Source of the DNA: Bacillus subtilis subsp. subtilis str. 168
GTDB taxonomy: Bacteria > Bacillota > Bacilli > Bacillales > Bacillaceae
NCBI RefSeq assembly: GCF_000009045.1
Contig: NC_000964.3
Coordinates: 806,001-870,000, forward strand
Direction: 5' to 3'
Length of the DNA: 64,000 nucleotides
The notes under the pieces were generated by a model that did no database searches, was not told where the DNA came from, and worked only from the letters and a program-made list of their open reading frames with translations. Numbering within the stretch: position 1 is the stretch's first letter; each line of letters begins with the position of its first letter. Positions 12,930-19,786 of this stretch are shown here, in pieces. The position numbers and the translations under genes are program-made.

Positions 12930-13235
12930 GCTTTCTACAAGCTCTTTTGTTTTAAAAGTTCTCTTTAGTCATTTATCATTATTAGAAAACAGAACAGAAA
13001 AAGAGCTCCTGTACACCTAGCTAAGATTGGCTAGTGTGTATGTCGATTCTTTTTCATATTCTTGCAAGCATCTGCGAGGGGGAGCTTAGTCGTTCACATT
13101 TTGCTTTCGCATCAATCTGCAATAGCAAAGTCTATGCGATTTTTTTACATCAGCAAAGATTTGTTCAATTTTTTCCTTTTATGCCGAGTTTTTCTGAAAC
13201 AGATAATTGATGGTACTCAACCATTTTCTTTTGGT
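12930..13235 (-). mobile_element. Degenerate 3' remnant of an IS1182-family-like transposase (left copy)
   Basis: Minus strand reads ...QLSVSEK / KEKIEQIFADVKKSHRLCYCRLMRKQNVND* / ACKNMKK with stop and frameshifts; resembles, from memory, the IS1182 C-terminus KEKIERSFADSKQLHGLRYCRLRG...ACQNMKKIA. Confidence 0.65.
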
Positions 13236-13310
13236 CAATAAAGTAATGTTTACTTATTAATTAAACACGCGAAAAAGCAAACGAAAACATAATTAAATTT
13301 TATATATTTA

Positions 13311-14531
13311 TTAAAAGCTTATATGTTTATTTACCTTTTTTTTGAATTGTAATTGAGAAAATCCATATATTGCGGACACTAATAAAAGAATACCTGCTGA
13401 AACATAAACTAAACGAACTCCAAGGAAATCTGAAATAGCCCCTATAGCCAGAATTGAAAACATAAAAATGAACTGTACTAAAGAAGACCTTGCAGACATT
13501 ATATTAATTCGAGTTTGCTCGGTTGTTATGTTCTGAATAAGTGTTTCTTGTGTAAGATCTCTTAATATATAAGCCGGCCCCATAAAGAGAACCAAAATTA
13601 GAGCTAAGTATGAATTACTTATAAAACCATATATTAAAGTTAAACTTCCATATGAGACAGCGCCAATTAACATAAAATTAATTAACTTATTTTGAAATCT
13701 CTCCGACAGCTTATATATTATAAATCCCCCTATCATCGAACCTAAATAATATGCTCCATTAATAAATCCCCACCATGATTCTCCTTTATGCAAGACTTCG
13801 TTAACGAAAGCTAAAGAGACAGATCCTATCCAAATCATTCCTGCCCATGACTCAATTAAATCCATAATAATAATTGTTCTAAGTTTCTTTTGGCTAAATA
13901 AATACCGCCAACCACTTACTATACTCTTATTGGGAGAATTTTTTTCACGTATGACAGAATTAGCGTGGCCATGTGGTAGACAAAATAAAAGAGAAAGAAG
14001 AGATGTAAACAACAAAAAGATAGTAAGTATAATGGTATATCCCTCACCTAAAAATGCAATTATGAGACCACCTAAAGACCAGCCTACAAATTGAAAAGTT
14101 TGGTCCACTGTAGATAATAATCCATTTGCTTTTACTCTTCTATCAGGAGAGATTATTTCCCCTATAATTGCACTTTTTAAAGGTGAGAACCATCCATTAA
14201 AAAAGGAAATACAGCTAATAATAATAAAGACTAAAATGAGAGTTTGATTAGAGTAAGTTCTTAATAAAGCATAGAACAAACATATTAATAACAGCATTTG
14301 TATCAATTGAGAAATAATTATTGTAAGAGGCAGTTTTAATCGAATTGTTATTAACGGTAATATAGCACTTCCAAAAATACGAAAAATAATACTTATTAAT
14401 GTCACCATAGAGGCGATGGTTGTCGAATTGGTCATTTTAAACAAAAACGAAATCACTACCATAGTATATAGAGAAAAACCTAAATTTGTAGTGGTCTGGC
14501 TAAATAAAATAGAATAATAACCTTTACTCAT
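13311..14531 (-). CDS. yfmI: MFS exporter (DHA3/MefA-like), 406 aa, AT-rich
   Basis: About 12 TM segments; SQTTTNLGFSLY N-terminus, PLKSAIIGEII, RVKANGLLSTVDQ; RBS AGGGAGG. Confidence 0.9.
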   Translation of the reverse strand: MSKGYYSILFSQTTTNLGFSLYTMVVISFLFKMTNSTTIASMVTLISIIFRIFGSAILPLITIRLKLPLTIIISQLIQMLLLICLFYALLRTYSNQTLILVFIIISCISFFNGWFSPLKSAIIGEIISPDRRVKANGLLSTVDQTFQFVGWSLGGLIIAFLGEGYTIILTIFLLFTSLLSLLFCLPHGHANSVIREKNSPNKSIVSGWRYLFSQKKLRTIIIMDLIESWAGMIWIGSVSLAFVNEVLHKGESWWGFINGAYYLGSMIGGFIIYKLSERFQNKLINFMLIGAVSYGSLTLIYGFISNSYLALILVLFMGPAYILRDLTQETLIQNITTEQTRINIMSARSSLVQFIFMFSILAIGAISDFLGVRLVYVSAGILLLVSAIYGFSQLQFKKKVNKHISF

Positions 14532-14728
14532 ATGTATCCTCCCTTGGAATAATTTTTCTCGGTAAAGAGCTTAAACATATTTAAACACCTTAAAACAACA
14601 AAAGTAAAGAAAAAATTTCCTTGTAAACTATTTACTTTTATTCTATTTATTGTTATTGTTTATTTAAGTTCTCTGACTATTCTATCAATATTCAGGGAAC
14701 CACATATCTTATTAAAGGGGGGAAAACC

Positions 14729-14800
14729 ATGAGAAAATTAAGAAAAAACTGGAGAAAATCGATTGTTAGCCCGGTTCTTTATACTAATGAAAAATGGTAA
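14729..14800 (+). CDS. yfmH: 23-aa peptide MRKLRKNWRKSIVSPVLYTNEKW (below ORF-track cut-off)
   Basis: AAAGGGGGG RBS, 6 nt to ATG 14729, TAA at 14798-14800; directly upstream of yfmG. Confidence 0.75.
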   Translation: MRKLRKNWRKSIVSPVLYTNEKW

Positions 14801-14808
14801 ACACTTAG

Positions 14809-14831
14809 GGAATAGCATTTAATGCTATTCC
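14809..14831 (+). other. Perfect 11-bp inverted repeat between yfmH and yfmG
   Basis: GGAATAGCATT-T-AATGCTATTCC. Confidence 0.85.
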
Positions 14832-14866
14832 TTATTTCAACAAACAAATCGGGAGGTTATCGTAAT

Positions 14867-16330
14867 TTGACTCTATTAATGCAAGATCATAAATCAATTT
14901 ACAATAAAGATATAGAAATATTAATTGAAGTTGAAGAACTTATTACTTCTGTTCCAGAAAATAAAAAAAATGATTTTAAGAGTTTAATCGATAATAGAAT
15001 TATGACTCTACTAAATAAAATTCAACACCCTGTAGCAGCGGAAAATGTGTTTGGGATGTGTATTGCTTATCCGAATACTTACATAAGGTATAGATTAATT
15101 GATTTCGTTGAAAAATGGGTACCTTATTTCTCTGCTGTAGAAACTATAATCAATCTAACCCAGGATCCGGATGATTTAGTTTCTTTTAAAGCTATGGATG
15201 TCTGTGCAAATCATAAAATTGAAGAATCTGTAGCATATTTGTCTTCGATTATTGATGATGTCCGGGAGAGTATAAGCTACCCTAAAAAACCTGTGGGATT
15301 AGGGGCCCAAAAAGTATTAAGTACATTATTAGATATATTCGGTGTTGAAAAACATGAAGAGCTAGTAATGCTAAAAAATTATTTTGATCAAAATGGTATA
15401 CTTCCTAATAACTTTGACTTTGAAGAAAAAATTCCTCAAAGTCTAATAGAGGAATTCGAAAAAACAGAAGAAGATGGGATGATTTTAATTCCGGGTGGCT
15501 TTTTTGAATTCGGTTTAAATGAAAATGAAATTCCTGACAAAACATTTAATTGGAAAGATGCTGTTCCTAGACAAAAAGTATGGTTACCTCCATTTTTTAT
15601 CGATAAGTATCCTGTTACAAATAAAGATTATGATATCTTTACCGAGTTCATAGAGGAAAATGGGCATATATTCTGTCATCCTAATGAACCGCAGAATAAA
15701 CAACATAGAAGAAATACATATTGGGATGATAGGTATTTAGATAATCATCCCGTTACAGGTATAGATTTTTATGATGCATTTGCTTACGCAAGATATAAGG
15801 GGAAAGAATTGCCAACCGAGTTTCAATGGGAAAAAGCTGCTCGAGGCGAAAAGGGTAATGTCTGGCCTTGGGGAGATAAATTTGATCCTGCAAAGGTTCA
15901 ATATGCTGGAAGTCTTTATAATGAACCCATTACTTCTTTAAAGTCCTGGAGAGAAAATTTATTAAAAGCTCATGCTGATAAAGAATTAAATCATTTAACA
16001 AGTGATATTTTTGAACAAAATGGTGAAAGTCCCTATGGAGTATGCGGTATGATCGGCGGAACATGGGAGTGGACTAGAAGTGAGCTTAAAACAAAGAGAG
16101 CTTTCCACCCTATTTTTGAGAATGTACCATTTAATAGTGTTAACTCATTTGCCGTTCTTAAAGGAGGATCATTCTTCTCTCATCCAGGCTTAATGTTCCC
16201 TTCTTTTAGAGCAAAAGATATTCCTTTCTGTCGACACAATGAAATGGGGATTAGATGCGTAAAGAATATTCCAGTATATAAAATTAGAGAATCAATTAAT
16301 GGGCCAATTACTAATAAAGCAATTTATTAA
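14867..16330 (+). CDS. yfmG: FGE/SUMF1-sulfatase-modifying-fold protein with helical N-terminal domain, 487 aa
   Basis: MILIPGGFFEFG, FFIDKYPVTN, HPVTGIDFYDAFAYA, LPTEFQWEKAARG, WPWG, SPYGVCGMIGGTWEWT, LKGGSF, GIRCV; GGGAGG then TTG at 14867. Confidence 0.88.
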   Translation: MTLLMQDHKSIYNKDIEILIEVEELITSVPENKKNDFKSLIDNRIMTLLNKIQHPVAAENVFGMCIAYPNTYIRYRLIDFVEKWVPYFSAVETIINLTQDPDDLVSFKAMDVCANHKIEESVAYLSSIIDDVRESISYPKKPVGLGAQKVLSTLLDIFGVEKHEELVMLKNYFDQNGILPNNFDFEEKIPQSLIEEFEKTEEDGMILIPGGFFEFGLNENEIPDKTFNWKDAVPRQKVWLPPFFIDKYPVTNKDYDIFTEFIEENGHIFCHPNEPQNKQHRRNTYWDDRYLDNHPVTGIDFYDAFAYARYKGKELPTEFQWEKAARGEKGNVWPWGDKFDPAKVQYAGSLYNEPITSLKSWRENLLKAHADKELNHLTSDIFEQNGESPYGVCGMIGGTWEWTRSELKTKRAFHPIFENVPFNSVNSFAVLKGGSFFSHPGLMFPSFRAKDIPFCRHNEMGIRCVKNIPVYKIRESINGPITNKAIY

Positions 16331-16384
16331 TCATTCTAGGTTAGAGACTTGATAAAAGTATACTAACATTGTGTAGTAATGTTC

Positions 16385-16670
16385 AGCTTGTAGAAAAAAC
16401 AATGTTTTTTCTACAAGATTTTATTTTAAATGCTTTTCAAAATTATCAGGGATTGAGAATCAGAAAAAGAGCCATTAAGCTCGATCTTAGCTAGGTATTA
16501 CGATCTTCTGTATATTATTGTGAGAAATATAGAAGATTCAGTTAGTTAGCATTTCGATTTTAAGCTGAGCCTGCAATAGCAAAGCATCTGTTTTGATTAT
16601 TCTTTTTCTGATACATAAGCTAATTTTGTCGCTTTTCTTTTTTGTCTTTTCACGCATTTCGAGGATGACT
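16385..16670 (-). mobile_element. Second, more decayed IS1182-like 3' remnant (right copy), same orientation as the left copy
   Basis: Shares TTTCTACAAG, CAGAAAAAGAGC and CTGCAATAGCAAAG with the left copy in the same order; minus strand reads RNA*KDKKEKRQN*L..., KQMLCYCRL, NIQKIV..LAK. Confidence 0.6.
16387..16427 (+). terminator. 14-bp perfect hairpin plus T run after yfmG (probably also part of the IS end)
   Basis: CTTGTAGAAAAAAC-AAT-GTTTTTTCTACAAG followed by ATTTTATTTT. Confidence 0.7.
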
Positions 16671-16902: not shown

Positions 16903-17703
16903 TCATTTCGCCCGTAATTTCGGGCACAGTCCCGTCGGCAGGCACATTGGCTTCTGGTCGATCGGGCTTCTCATGATGCAGCATTCCAAGCCGAAGACTT
17001 CACGGAAAAATGGCTGGGTGAACACATCTTCCGGTGTTCCGGCGTTGTATATTTTTCCGTCCAGCACACTGATCAGATAGTCAGCATATTGAGCGGCTTG
17101 GTTTAAATCATGGAGCACCATGACAACGGTGCGGCCATGGTCGCGGTTCAGCTTTTTCAGCAGTTCAAGCACTTCAATCTGATGTGAGATGTCTAAATAC
17201 GTGGTCGGCTCATCAAGCAAAAGCAAATCAGTGCCTTGCGCAAGTGCCATGGAAATCCAGGCTCTTTGTCTTTGGCCGCCTGAGAGGGCATCAAGTGTCC
17301 GATCCTTCAGTTCAATCATGCCCGTTGCTTCCAGCGCCCACTCTACCATGTCATGATCCTCTTGGGTATGCTTGGATAACAGCTTTTTGTGAGGATGTCT
17401 GCCAAAATAGCATAATTCCTCTACCGTCAATCCTTCAGGAGCCTGAGGAGATTGTGGAAGAATGGCCAGTTTTTTTGCGACTTCTTTTGATGGCTGGCGG
17501 TGGATGTCTTTTCCTTCTAGTAGCACTGTACCGCTTTTTGGGGCCATCAGCCTGGCGAGCGATTTGAGGATTGTTGATTTACCGCAGCCATTAGCGCCGA
17601 TGAGCGCAGTGATTTTTCCTTCTTCTATCTTTAAGTCGACTCCGTCAATAATCACTGTACTGTCATATGAAAGAGTGAGCTGGTCTGCAGCCAGTTTTCC
17701 CAT
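16903..17703 (-). CDS. yfmF: Ferric-citrate ABC importer ATPase, 266 aa
   Basis: [43 protein letters not shown]. Confidence 0.95.
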
Positions 17704-17715
17704 GGTATCCTCTCC

Positions 17716-18717
17716 CTACTGTTTCCTCGCTTCGAATTTCAATAAATATAAGAAATAAGGCGCGCCGATCACGGCTGTCAGTATTCCGGCAGGTATTTCA
17801 ACCGGAGGCATGATGCCGCGCCCTAACGTATCTGCAATTAATAATATAATAGCACCAATCAATGCCGATGCAGGCAGTAAATATTTAGCTTTTTCTCCGG
17901 TAAGCCGTCTGGCGATATGCGGAGCAAGCAAGCCGATAAAACCGATTGAGCCGACGACGGCTACACAGCTTCCCGCCAGCGCCACCGCGGTGAAAATCAG
18001 GATGAATCTCAGCCGGTTTGCGTTTTCTCCGAGACCCTGTGCAAGCTCATCCCCGAGTGACATAAGATCCAGCTTCGGTATGAGTATGCAGACGATCGGA
18101 AAAAGAATCAAAAGCCATGGCGCAAGCAGCTTGACTTCTTCCCAGTTTCTTCCCCAGAGGCTTCCTGTCAGCCAAATGAGTGCAGCATTCACGTCGCCTG
18201 GAAACTTGACCATCATATATTGCATTCCGGCGTGGCAGACCGCGCCTAAAGCAATGCCTGATAAAGCCAGTGAAGAGGGCTGAATGCTCTTTTTTCGGGC
18301 TATCATTAATAATAGTACAGCAATAATGGCGGCTCCGGCAAATGCGGAGAACGGAAGCACGTATACCGGCGACTCAGGAAAGATGAGAATCACAGCCATC
18401 GCCGCAAGTCCGGAGCCTTTTGAAATGCCGACAACGTCCGGGGAAGCGAGCGGATTTCGGATCACACCCTGTAAAATCGCTCCGGCAGCGGCAAGTCCAG
18501 CACCTGCCAAAATCGCTAATATAATGCGGGGAAGGCGATATTGCTGGATGATAAATTCAAAGGAATGATCCAGTCCCAGCAGATTCGTCACTACCGCATC
18601 AGGTGAAATGTATAATGCACCGATTCCAATGCTGATGACGGACAGAACGATTAAAATCACGGCCAATATGAGTATCGCCAGTAAGGGGCGTTTTTGTTTT
18701 CTGGTTGTTTTCTTCAT
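17716..18717 (-). CDS. yfmE: FecCD-family permease, 333 aa
   Basis: RLPRIIL, RNPLASPDVVG, IGFIGLLAPHIAR, EIPAG. Confidence 0.95.
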   Translation of the reverse strand: MKKTTRKQKRPLLAILILAVILIVLSVISIGIGALYISPDAVVTNLLGLDHSFEFIIQQYRLPRIILAILAGAGLAAAGAILQGVIRNPLASPDVVGISKGSGLAAMAVILIFPESPVYVLPFSAFAGAAIIAVLLLMIARKKSIQPSSLALSGIALGAVCHAGMQYMMVKFPGDVNAALIWLTGSLWGRNWEEVKLLAPWLLILFPIVCILIPKLDLMSLGDELAQGLGENANRLRFILIFTAVALAGSCVAVVGSIGFIGLLAPHIARRLTGEKAKYLLPASALIGAIILLIADTLGRGIMPPVEIPAGILTAVIGAPYFLYLLKFEARKQ

Positions 18718-19715
18718 TTCAGGTTTCGCCCTTTCCTTGCCAAATATAAGAAAAACGGCGTTCCGATAATCGCGGTGACAATGCCGACCGGTGATTCATA
18801 AGGAAATGCAATCCATCTGGCCAGAACATCTGCGTACACCAGCAAAATGGCACCGAACAGTGCCGAAAACGGAAGCACGTATTGATAATGTTCTCCGATC
18901 AGCTTGCGGACAATATGCGGGACGAGCAGCCCGACAAAGCCAATCGGCCCGGCGACGGCTACGGAAGCGCCGGAAAGAATTAAAATAATCAAACTGATCA
19001 GAATCCTGATGCCGTTCATATTTTGTCCAAGCCCTTTTGCTGTTTCGTCTCCGAGACCGAGAACAGAAACAGAACCGGAAAATACGAGGGCAAGCCCGAT
19101 GCCAATGACAGAAAAAGGAGCGATGGTTATGACGTCCTGCCAGTTGCTGCCGTCGATTGCGCCTGTCATCCAGTACAGAACATCCTCACCTGACTCATTT
19201 AAAATAATGATGGCCTGTGTCATAGAGGAGAGGAACAAGTGCACGGCCATTCCTGACAGCGCCAGCTTGACAGGCGTCATTCCGCCGGATGAGGCAATCA
19301 TATACACAATCGCGCCGCCTGCTGCCGCACCCGCAAAAGCGAATATAACAGATGAATAGGGCGATGCCGGCAGAATGACGAGAGAAGCAACAACAAAAAG
19401 CGATGCACCCGCATTCACACCGAAAATTTGGGGTGAAGCCAGAGGATTTCTGGTCATAGCCTGCATCAGCGCCCCTGCTACAGCTAGGCTGGCGCCGACA
19501 AAAACGCCGATTAATGTGCGGGGAAGGCGAAGAGTAGAGATGATGAGCTGTTCCTTTGAACCGTCCCATACAAAAAGATATTTCAATGAATCTATGATGC
19601 TGATGTCTGAGGCTCCTACTGAAAGATTCAGCCCAAGCCCAAATATAAAAATAATCAGTGCAATGATAAACATCATCAGTCTTGATGATGAGCGCCGTTT
19701 GGCTGAATGATACAA
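18714..19715 (-). CDS. yfmD: FecCD-family permease, 333 aa
   Basis: RLPRTL, RNPLASPQIFG, IGFVGLLVPHIVR, ESPVG; TTG start after AAGGAAGTGAG. Confidence 0.93.
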   Translation of the reverse strand: MYHSAKRRSSSRLMMFIIALIIFIFGLGLNLSVGASDISIIDSLKYLFVWDGSKEQLIISTLRLPRTLIGVFVGASLAVAGALMQAMTRNPLASPQIFGVNAGASLFVVASLVILPASPYSSVIFAFAGAAAGGAIVYMIASSGGMTPVKLALSGMAVHLFLSSMTQAIIILNESGEDVLYWMTGAIDGSNWQDVITIAPFSVIGIGLALVFSGSVSVLGLGDETAKGLGQNMNGIRILISLIILILSGASVAVAGPIGFVGLLVPHIVRKLIGEHYQYVLPFSALFGAILLVYADVLARWIAFPYESPVGIVTAIIGTPFFLYLARKGRNLK

Positions 19716-19786
19716 CAGTCTCACTTCCTTACTGCGTCTGGTTGCAAAAACGAAGAAGCAAGGATTCCCCTCGCTTCTCATTTGTC

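Follow-up and report, generated by a model that had tools for sequence, protein, structure and literature searches.

Upstream of yfmG, in the window analysed here (the whole stretch of 64,000 nucleotides from the Bacillus subtilis 168 chromosome), lies an open reading frame (ORF) of only 23 codons, and the question raised by this locus is whether such a short peptide is made for its own sake or serves to control the gene that follows. Three possibilities had been considered in the original prediction, i.e., a peptide oxidized or crosslinked at a C-terminal Y-x4-W segment, a cationic membrane-active peptide and a regulatory leader peptide controlling yfmG. The ORF is present as described, on the + strand (14729..14800, from ATG 14729 to TAA 14800 in the ORF listing), and it encodes MRKLRKNWRKSIVSPVLYTNEKW. 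Its translation contains the anticipated features, namely six Lys/Arg within residues 1-10, the segments SIVSP and VLYTNEKW, two Trp codons (14750-14752 and 14795-14797) and neither Cys nor a C/SxPxR motif. Regarding the start, placed at 14711, the ATG is at 14729, and the segment from 14711 onward includes a strong Shine-Dalgarno (SD) sequence, AAGGGGGG (14715..14722, +), read from the sequence 6 nt before the ATG. A 23-residue ORF is by itself not above chance, because 95 ORFs of at least 20 residues overlap the surrounding 8 kb in the ORF listing. It is accepted as real because it possesses this SD site, because its motif is exclusive to the regions upstream of YfmG (see below) and because expression of a yfmH'-'lacZ fusion has been published; likewise, a chance ORF within the small RNA ncr471 was a candidate ruled out by conservation and by the published translation data. 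The gene order and sequence of the locus agree with yfmI-yfmH-yfmG of B. subtilis, and the ORF is yfmH, an already-known gene with a published regulatory function. YfmH had no match to any peptide family in Pfam or NCBIfam.

Exactly this ORF and locus were studied by Ritchey et al. (2020; RNA 26:1431; PMC7491331). A single transcription start was located 201 nt upstream of the yfmG TTG codon, which corresponds to position ~14666 of the window (PMC7491331). Expression of a leader-lacZ transcriptional fusion was ~8-fold down with amino acids, an effect of the leader and not of the promoter, and a yfmH'-'lacZ translational fusion was expressed and lost its expression upon an ATG-to-TAG change (PMC7491331). 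The same change in yfmH lowered the expression of yfmG'-'lacZ 3-fold and abolished its response to amino acids (PMC7491331). Expression fell 2.5-fold upon addition of Lys and Arg and 3-fold upon addition of Ile, Leu and Val, and the 13 encoded amino acids repressed nearly as strongly as complete amino-acid medium (PMC7491331). Between yfmH and yfmG, a NusA-dependent intrinsic terminator was seen by Term-seq (as cited in PMC7491331). When yfmH is not translated, or when all amino acids are supplied, most transcripts stop at this terminator to give a 173-nt RNA, and amino-acid limitation leads to read-through into yfmG (PMC7491331). In the model of the authors, anti-antiterminator, antiterminator and terminator hairpins overlap and the speed of yfmH translation is the readout (PMC7491331). 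The terminated leader is ncr471, a 173-nt RNA between yfmI and yfmG (Irnov et al., 2010). Because Ritchey et al. (2020) showed both translation and an attenuator role, the regulatory leader peptide, third of the initial possibilities, is the experimentally established function (PMC7491331). We hence read the ORF as yfmH, encoding the leader peptide through which a ribosome-dependent transcription attenuator operates in the 201-nt yfmG leader, with a probability of about 0.87.

The elements of such an attenuator can be located in the window. A probable sigma-A promoter of yfmHG occupies 14631..14659 (+), with a -35 element TTTACT (14631-14636), a 17-nt spacer and an extended -10 element TGtTATTGT (14651-14659); with its weak -35 and extended -10, it was missed by the consensus promoter scan. 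From a start near 14666, the terminated leader transcript of ~173 nt (14666..14838, +) runs to a 3' end in the U-tract after the terminator. ncr471, at 820666-820838 in strain 168, coincides with this leader given a window start of ~806001, and it is an abundant and stable 173-nt RNA in its own right. The SD and ORF of yfmH both lie inside the leader (14666-14866), on the same strand as yfmG. Before the ORF, a 5' stem-loop (14668..14700, +) is predicted in both the RNAfold MFE and centroid structures. Inside the ORF, the hairpin published as the anti-antiterminator (14747..14776, +), in which the Asn7-Trp8 codons are paired with the Pro15-Val16 codons, is weak (-6.6 kcal/mol, z = -0.1). The antiterminator pairing (14764..14817, +) joins 14764-14772 with 14808-14817, overlaps the 5' arm of the terminator and shows up on folding the leader without the terminator 3' arm; a duplex search gave z = -1.5 for it in the window. 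The intrinsic terminator (14806..14838, +) combines a 13-bp stem (14806-14818/14822-14834) with a U-rich tail and begins 5 nt past the yfmH stop codon. RNAfold assigns -40.8 kcal/mol to 14666-14845 (z = -3.4 versus dinucleotide shuffles), with the terminator in the centroid, and the published 1:2, 2:3 and 3:4 pairing scheme is reproducible in the window sequence. The yfmG gene (14851..16330, +, 487 residues) has an SD, GGGAGG, at 14851-14856 and a TTG start at 14867, and a terminator at 16387..16417 (+) closes the operon. No Rfam family matched the yfmHG leader or five orthologous loci.

In this leader, transcription begins near 14666, and ribosomes loading at the strong SD translate the 23 codons. 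According to the published model, a ribosome advancing slowly through the Lys/Arg-rich first half would block the intra-ORF hairpin 14747-14776, and 14764-14772, thus freed, would pair with the terminator 5' arm. Where the ribosome stands would set whether the terminator forms. This model, in which 13 amino acids are sensed generically via alternative helices, rests on one species. We do not see novelty in the identity of yfmH or in its regulatory function, which are already known and to which confirmation adds nothing; what a comparison across species can address is the part of this system that is actually conserved.

Orthologues were sought with YfmG against one genome per species, with a YfmG alignment against metagenomes and among the contigs of protein-search homologues. 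The set retained consists of the intact YfmG orthologues with at least 50% identity, and it comprises 14 distinct upstream peptides. A small ORF of the same family precedes yfmG in every one of them, among Bacillaceae, Paenibacillaceae, Thermoactinomycetaceae and Staphylococcaceae, and this occurrence of a yfmH-type ORF upstream of all intact YfmG orthologues examined is new in this analysis. Two metagenome contigs (L015/L016) encode MKKMTKNWKKSIVNPVLYTNAKW and a YfmG 78% identical to that of the window, to be compared with 77% for P0002 of Priestia megaterium; B. spizizenii has an ORF identical to that of B. inaquosorum (L001). Other members of the family are MKKLNKNWRKALSQPTICMQNEKWG in Anoxybacillus, MKMKKNWRNRLAIVMPVLQEEKW in Anoxybacteroides, MKKNWRKRLSVALPVFSNEKW in B. 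wiedmannii, MKRNWRKHITKPLTFSREKW in Thermoactinomycetaceae, MKRNWKKGFSTPMPFFSEIKWG and MRKNWRKSLKKQVVVQTNEKW in Paenibacillus, MKTLERDWKESIFEPVLNVSNDKWD in Mammaliicoccus and MKSLKRNWKETIIEPSLSISGKWD in S. kloosii. Identity to the B. subtilis peptide ranges from 30 to 74%, that of the corresponding YfmG from 50 to 78%, and the peptide tracks the enzyme.

In all 14 peptides, [N/D]-W-[R/K] is found close to the N-terminus and K-W at the other end, zero or one residue ahead of the stop; 15-16 residues separate the two Trp of this invariant motif. Both Trp and the Lys before the last Trp are kept throughout, a hydrophobic residue occupies position 12 in every case, 13 peptides contain Pro and six have one extra residue after the last Trp. 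The Trp pair, to which the original prediction had drawn attention through its two codons, is the best-conserved feature of YfmH. In six-frame translations of 527 kb, the pattern [ND]W[RK]-x12-13-KW-x0-1-stop occurs 21 times, in each case just upstream of a YfmG orthologue and on the same strand, and nowhere else. The surroundings are equally constant: a strong SD precedes the small ORF at each of the 14 loci, and the layout SD - small ORF - hairpin - SD - yfmG recurs in all of them, with hairpins of -20 to -31 kcal/mol located 0-17 nt past the stop. The terminator stem starts at most 10 nt past the stop codon in 10 of the 14 loci and after 12-17 nt in the other four. The SD and start of yfmG follow the small-ORF stop by 63-153 nt, the exceptions being Anoxybacillus (326 nt) and Siminovitchia (1033 nt), in the latter of which a putative transposase (IS) remnant, as read from the sequence, intervenes.

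Beyond this set, distant YfmG homologues (35-41% identity) are preceded by a short ORF and a hairpin at L081:~290-359, L082:~2800-2895 and L018:2430-2585. The ORF on a Priestia plasmid ends with ...NPSLATKWGGGEDD, the one on a high-GC metagenome contig reads MDILRERLVAVTSRLPKVKDWPG and that of a second high-GC contig ends with ...ETKEWG. They have in common the C-terminal ending K-x0-1-W-(x)-G-stop, and the N-terminal NW[RK] motif is absent from them. On the other side, the module of peptide, enzyme and exporter appears to be decaying in some Anoxybacillus: the peptide ATG is replaced by ATA in Anoxybacillus kestanbolensis (L003:~724-801), and in A. ayderensis (L007:1-812) a transposase-like gene stands where the peptide would be expected and the MFS gene is split.

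These alignments make it possible to ask what selection acts on. Compared pairwise, the ORFs differ at rates of 0.43, 0.34 and 0.52 at the first, second and third codon positions, as expected of a coding sequence. For the Arg following the first Trp, five sequences use AGA and five others CGC or CGT, and the Asn, Lys, Pro and Glu codons also vary synonymously among the orthologues; the switch between AGA and CGY indicates that selection acts on amino acids or codon identities. The RNA behaves differently. From the codon before the first Trp to the stop, the folds of the orthologues are no stabler than shuffles (mean z = -0.14), and the pairing of the first Trp codon with the Pro codon is found only in the window, in B. 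inaquosorum and B. spizizenii and in Kroppenstedtia; a hairpin built on the first Trp codon was thus rejected as the cause of the Trp and Pro conservation. The best pairing between the ORF and the terminator 5' arm reaches a mean z of -0.56 versus shuffles across the 14 loci, and only about six of them have it in the expected segment, a weak signal from which conservation of the antiterminator is not claimed. The conserved parts are hence the peptide, or the codon identities, together with the terminator close by, to the exclusion of the alternative helices. Since the peptide is conserved and the helices are not, something sequence-specific remains beyond the published model, which may be the sensing of Trp, Lys and Arg codons, an arrest by the nascent chain or a second role as YfmG substrate.

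With helices that vary and a peptide and terminator that do not, the attenuation mechanism probably hinges on the position at which the ribosome pauses. We propose as an amendment to the published model that the determinant would be a ribosome pause, on the two Trp codons or else on the stop codon. In B. subtilis, the first Trp codon stands at the start of the first hairpin and the second just before the terminator. Once the stop codon has entered its A site, a ribosome would cover ~10 nt downstream, a distance within which the foot of the terminator is reached at 10 of the 14 loci; speaking against the attenuator model, the four terminators that begin 12-17 nt past the stop lie beyond the direct reach of a terminating ribosome. 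As to the signal itself, a generic sensor of translation speed leaves the invariant Trp pair, the Lys before the last Trp and the 15-16-residue spacing unaccounted for.

A classical form of codon sensing, centred on Trp with a contribution of Lys and Arg, would take the two invariant UGG codons as the regulatory codons: when charged tRNA-Trp is low, the ribosome would stall at the start of the first hairpin or before the terminator, and read-through would follow. Trp is generally among the rarest residues, and its conservation at both positions in all 14 peptides speaks for such a sensor. However, B. subtilis already senses Trp via TRAP and a T-box, YfmG has no known link to the synthesis of Trp, Lys or Arg, and the hydrophobic position 12 and the Pro of 13 peptides are left unexplained. 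The enrichment of Lys and Arg at the N-terminus of YfmH and the 2.5-fold repression by these two amino acids (PMC7491331) fit this explanation, which we nonetheless regard as doubtful.

The same conservation may reflect the peptide rather than its codons. It is possible, and we put it forward tentatively from sequence comparisons, that YfmH is a sequence-specific ribosome arrest peptide, a candidate role that would refine the attenuator rather than replace it. With K-W at the peptidyl-transferase centre and N-W-R/K deeper in the exit tunnel, 15-16 residues away, the nascent chain would slow either termination or the last step of elongation, and the parked ribosome would hide the base of the terminator stem; this arrest might respond to a small molecule linked to YfmG/YfmI. 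In favor of an arrest are the conservation at the amino-acid level, focused on the C-terminus and on residues a fixed distance away, the alternation of AGA and CGY for Arg, the lack of conserved intra-ORF helices and the proximity of terminator and stop (at most 10 nt in 10 of the 14 loci). To these can be added the K-x0-1-W-(x)-G-stop endings before distant high-GC YfmG homologues, where conservation at the RNA level is impossible, and the precedents of TnaC and PepNL, which arrest at stop codons (PMC11890864). On the other hand, the register to the stop is not fixed, as shown by the additional residue after the last Trp in six of 14 peptides, and the published effects of Lys plus Arg and of Ile plus Leu plus Val (PMC7491331) are compatible with plain codon sensing.

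Whether YfmH could in addition be a substrate depends on the enzyme encoded downstream. YfmG matches the FGE-sulfatase family (Pfam PF03781, E = 1e-68), its other family matches being limited to weak EgtB/SenA/GldK models. The AlphaFold2 model (pLDDT 90.8) comprises a helical domain (residues 8-176) and an FGE-sulfatase fold; Foldseek matches are EgtB/OvsA, CalU17 and FGE, with EgtB and OvsA as the nearest two-domain structural relatives. The predicted model thus places the protein in the FGE/EgtB/CalU17 fold and indicates no substrate. Aligned to a human FGE chain, YfmG carries Ser438 where the latter has Cys336 and Met443 where it has Cys341, Cys336 and Cys341 being the catalytic cysteines in human FGE residue numbering; Ser438 is invariant in all 31 aligned homologues and Met443 in the six closest. 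With both catalytic cysteines replaced, YfmG is not a canonical FGE. YfmH was likewise said not to be a canonical FGE substrate, and the absence of a C/S-x-P-x-R motif together with that of both catalytic Cys in YfmG agrees with this statement. The YfmG orthologues share a near-invariant His/Cys/Glu-rich loop, GHIFCHPNEPxxKxHxRNTYWD (residues ~267-294, window 15665-15750), predicted as coil, which could be a candidate metal site replacing the missing FGE cysteines.

Regarding oxidation or crosslinking at Y-x4-W, the comparison of orthologues does not support this site. Conservation of both aromatic residues had been suggested as a check; Trp is kept in 14 of 14 peptides, and Tyr18 is found in only three of the 14 distinct peptides. 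Position 18 is Tyr or Phe in eight and otherwise Gly, Met, Leu, Gln, Val or Ser. If a modification took place, its site would rather be the C-terminal Lys-Trp. We regard as unlikely a dual role of this kind, in which YfmH would act as a cis regulator and, once released, its C-terminal Lys-Trp would serve YfmG as substrate, precursor or scaffold, with YfmI exporting the product. Several observations nevertheless lend themselves to this scenario: the co-occurrence of peptide, enzyme and MFS exporter is strict, peptide and enzyme diverge at a roughly equal rate (30-74% versus 50-78% identity), the best NCBIfam match of YfmI, below the family cut-off, is a ryptide (RiPP) export MFS, certain clusters additionally contain genes for a PhyH dioxygenase, a second FGE-like protein or methyltransferases, and the yfmHG promoter is AbrB-dependent and listed alongside the sboA-alb (subtilosin) and epeXEPAB (EPE) operons. 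Against it, no RiPP recognition domain was found in YfmG or in the locus (Pfam/NCBIfam), no protease gene in any YfmG neighbourhood examined, no GG/GA-type cleavage motif in the 14 YfmH peptides and, in our literature search, no RiPP class using an FGE-fold enzyme. Moreover, the substrates of EgtB and OvsA are free amino acids, a small-molecule pathway of this kind would suit the methyltransferase neighbours, Tyr is not conserved, and a cis element requires just such a strict placement upstream, together with a terminator. Should the dual role be true, an FGE-fold enzyme would for the first time be at the heart of a RiPP-like pathway, and the precursor gene would double as the attenuator of its operon.

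The proposal of a free cationic, membrane-active or antimicrobial peptide fares worse, and we consider it very improbable. Its net charge of +6 in B. subtilis, and of +4 to +6 in 11 of the 13 other distinct peptides, would suit such an activity. However, the charge drops to -2 in Mammaliicoccus and to +2 in S. kloosii with the W...KW motif retained, and this reading fails because the charge is lost in these staphylococcal peptides and the motif is not. A Met-Lys-Lys N-terminus is furthermore frequent in well-translated short ORFs, neither a signal-peptide motif nor a long hydrophobic stretch is visible in YfmH by eye, and no immunity gene was identified adjoining yfmH.

Returning to yfmH as an attenuator gene, its neighbourhood recurs with it. 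Divergent from yfmHG lies yfmI (13311..14531, -), encoding an MFS_3-type exporter of 406 residues, and an MFS exporter gene adjoins yfmH/yfmG in every locus. The block yfmI-yfmH-yfmG (window 13000-16500) has a GC content of 26-33%, compared to 43-52% in its flanks, and is 98-99% identical to those of B. inaquosorum and B. spizizenii, compared to 88-94% for the flanks; YfmG orthologues are patchy across Bacillales and are also found on plasmids. The low GC content and an identity exceeding that of the flanks suggest that the module was exchanged recently or acquired horizontally. In Siminovitchia and the B. wiedmannii group (L009:1-2775, L078:1-2753, L086:2226-5841), the peptide and yfmG stand opposite a divergent operon for a PhyH-type dioxygenase, a second FGE-fold protein (~433-450 residues) and an MFS exporter, and other homologous clusters (L080, L081, L083, L084) add one to three SAM methyltransferases. 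Such groupings look like a small biosynthetic gene cluster, and a small-molecule pathway would fit, since EgtB and OvsA use free amino acids and since SAM methyltransferases are present in the clusters. Farther downstream, at 16903-19781 (-), an ABC ATPase and two FecCD-type permease genes, presumably the iron-citrate uptake genes yfmF/E/D, are unrelated to yfmH.

Taken together, a mobile three-gene module composed of a peptide, an FGE-fold enzyme and an MFS exporter is found in one of the best-studied bacteria. Over four Bacillales families, its two Trp, Lys and spacing are conserved and the proposed helices are not. Neither the conservation at the peptide level, nor the fixed Trp-Trp spacing, nor the mobility of the module is accounted for by a model derived from one species, and the signal or mechanism may be more specific than assumed, through Trp-tRNA, an arrest of the nascent chain or a relationship between peptide and enzyme.

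The closest known system is the yfmHG attenuator itself, which is the same locus and agrees in its 23-residue ORF, yfmG TTG start, 201-nt leader and terminator (PMC7491331); what departs from the published model is that the peptide and terminator are conserved over four Bacillales families and the proposed alternative helices are not. The enterobacterial trpL, hisL and leuL attenuators share with yfmH a short translated leader ORF, an intrinsic terminator, overlapping 1:2/2:3/3:4 pairings (for yfmH, in the B. subtilis sequence) and a ribosome stall leading to read-through. In contrast to them, yfmH has no run of codons for one amino acid, yfmG falls outside the amino-acid biosynthesis genes, the proposed regulatory helices of yfmH lack conservation and conservation spans the whole peptide. 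Among peptide modification systems, streptide StrA (with its Lys-Trp crosslink), the ryptides and PqqA have precursors of 20-30 residues encoded beside a modifying enzyme and an MFS exporter. By analogy, YfmH may be likened to these precursors for its conserved aromatic and Lys residues near the C-terminus. Their maturases are radical SAM enzymes or belong to other known types, whereas the enzyme of yfmHG has an FGE fold. TnaC and PepNL (PMC11890864) are, like yfmH, upstream ORFs of 14-24 residues with critical C-terminal residues, others at a fixed distance back and a link to Trp, and their stalled ribosome governs transcription or expression of the downstream gene. YfmH shares no sequence similarity with them and is a candidate arrest peptide only. 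The targets of the stalled ribosome would also differ, as TnaC blocks the access of Rho whereas the yfmH leader has an intrinsic terminator.
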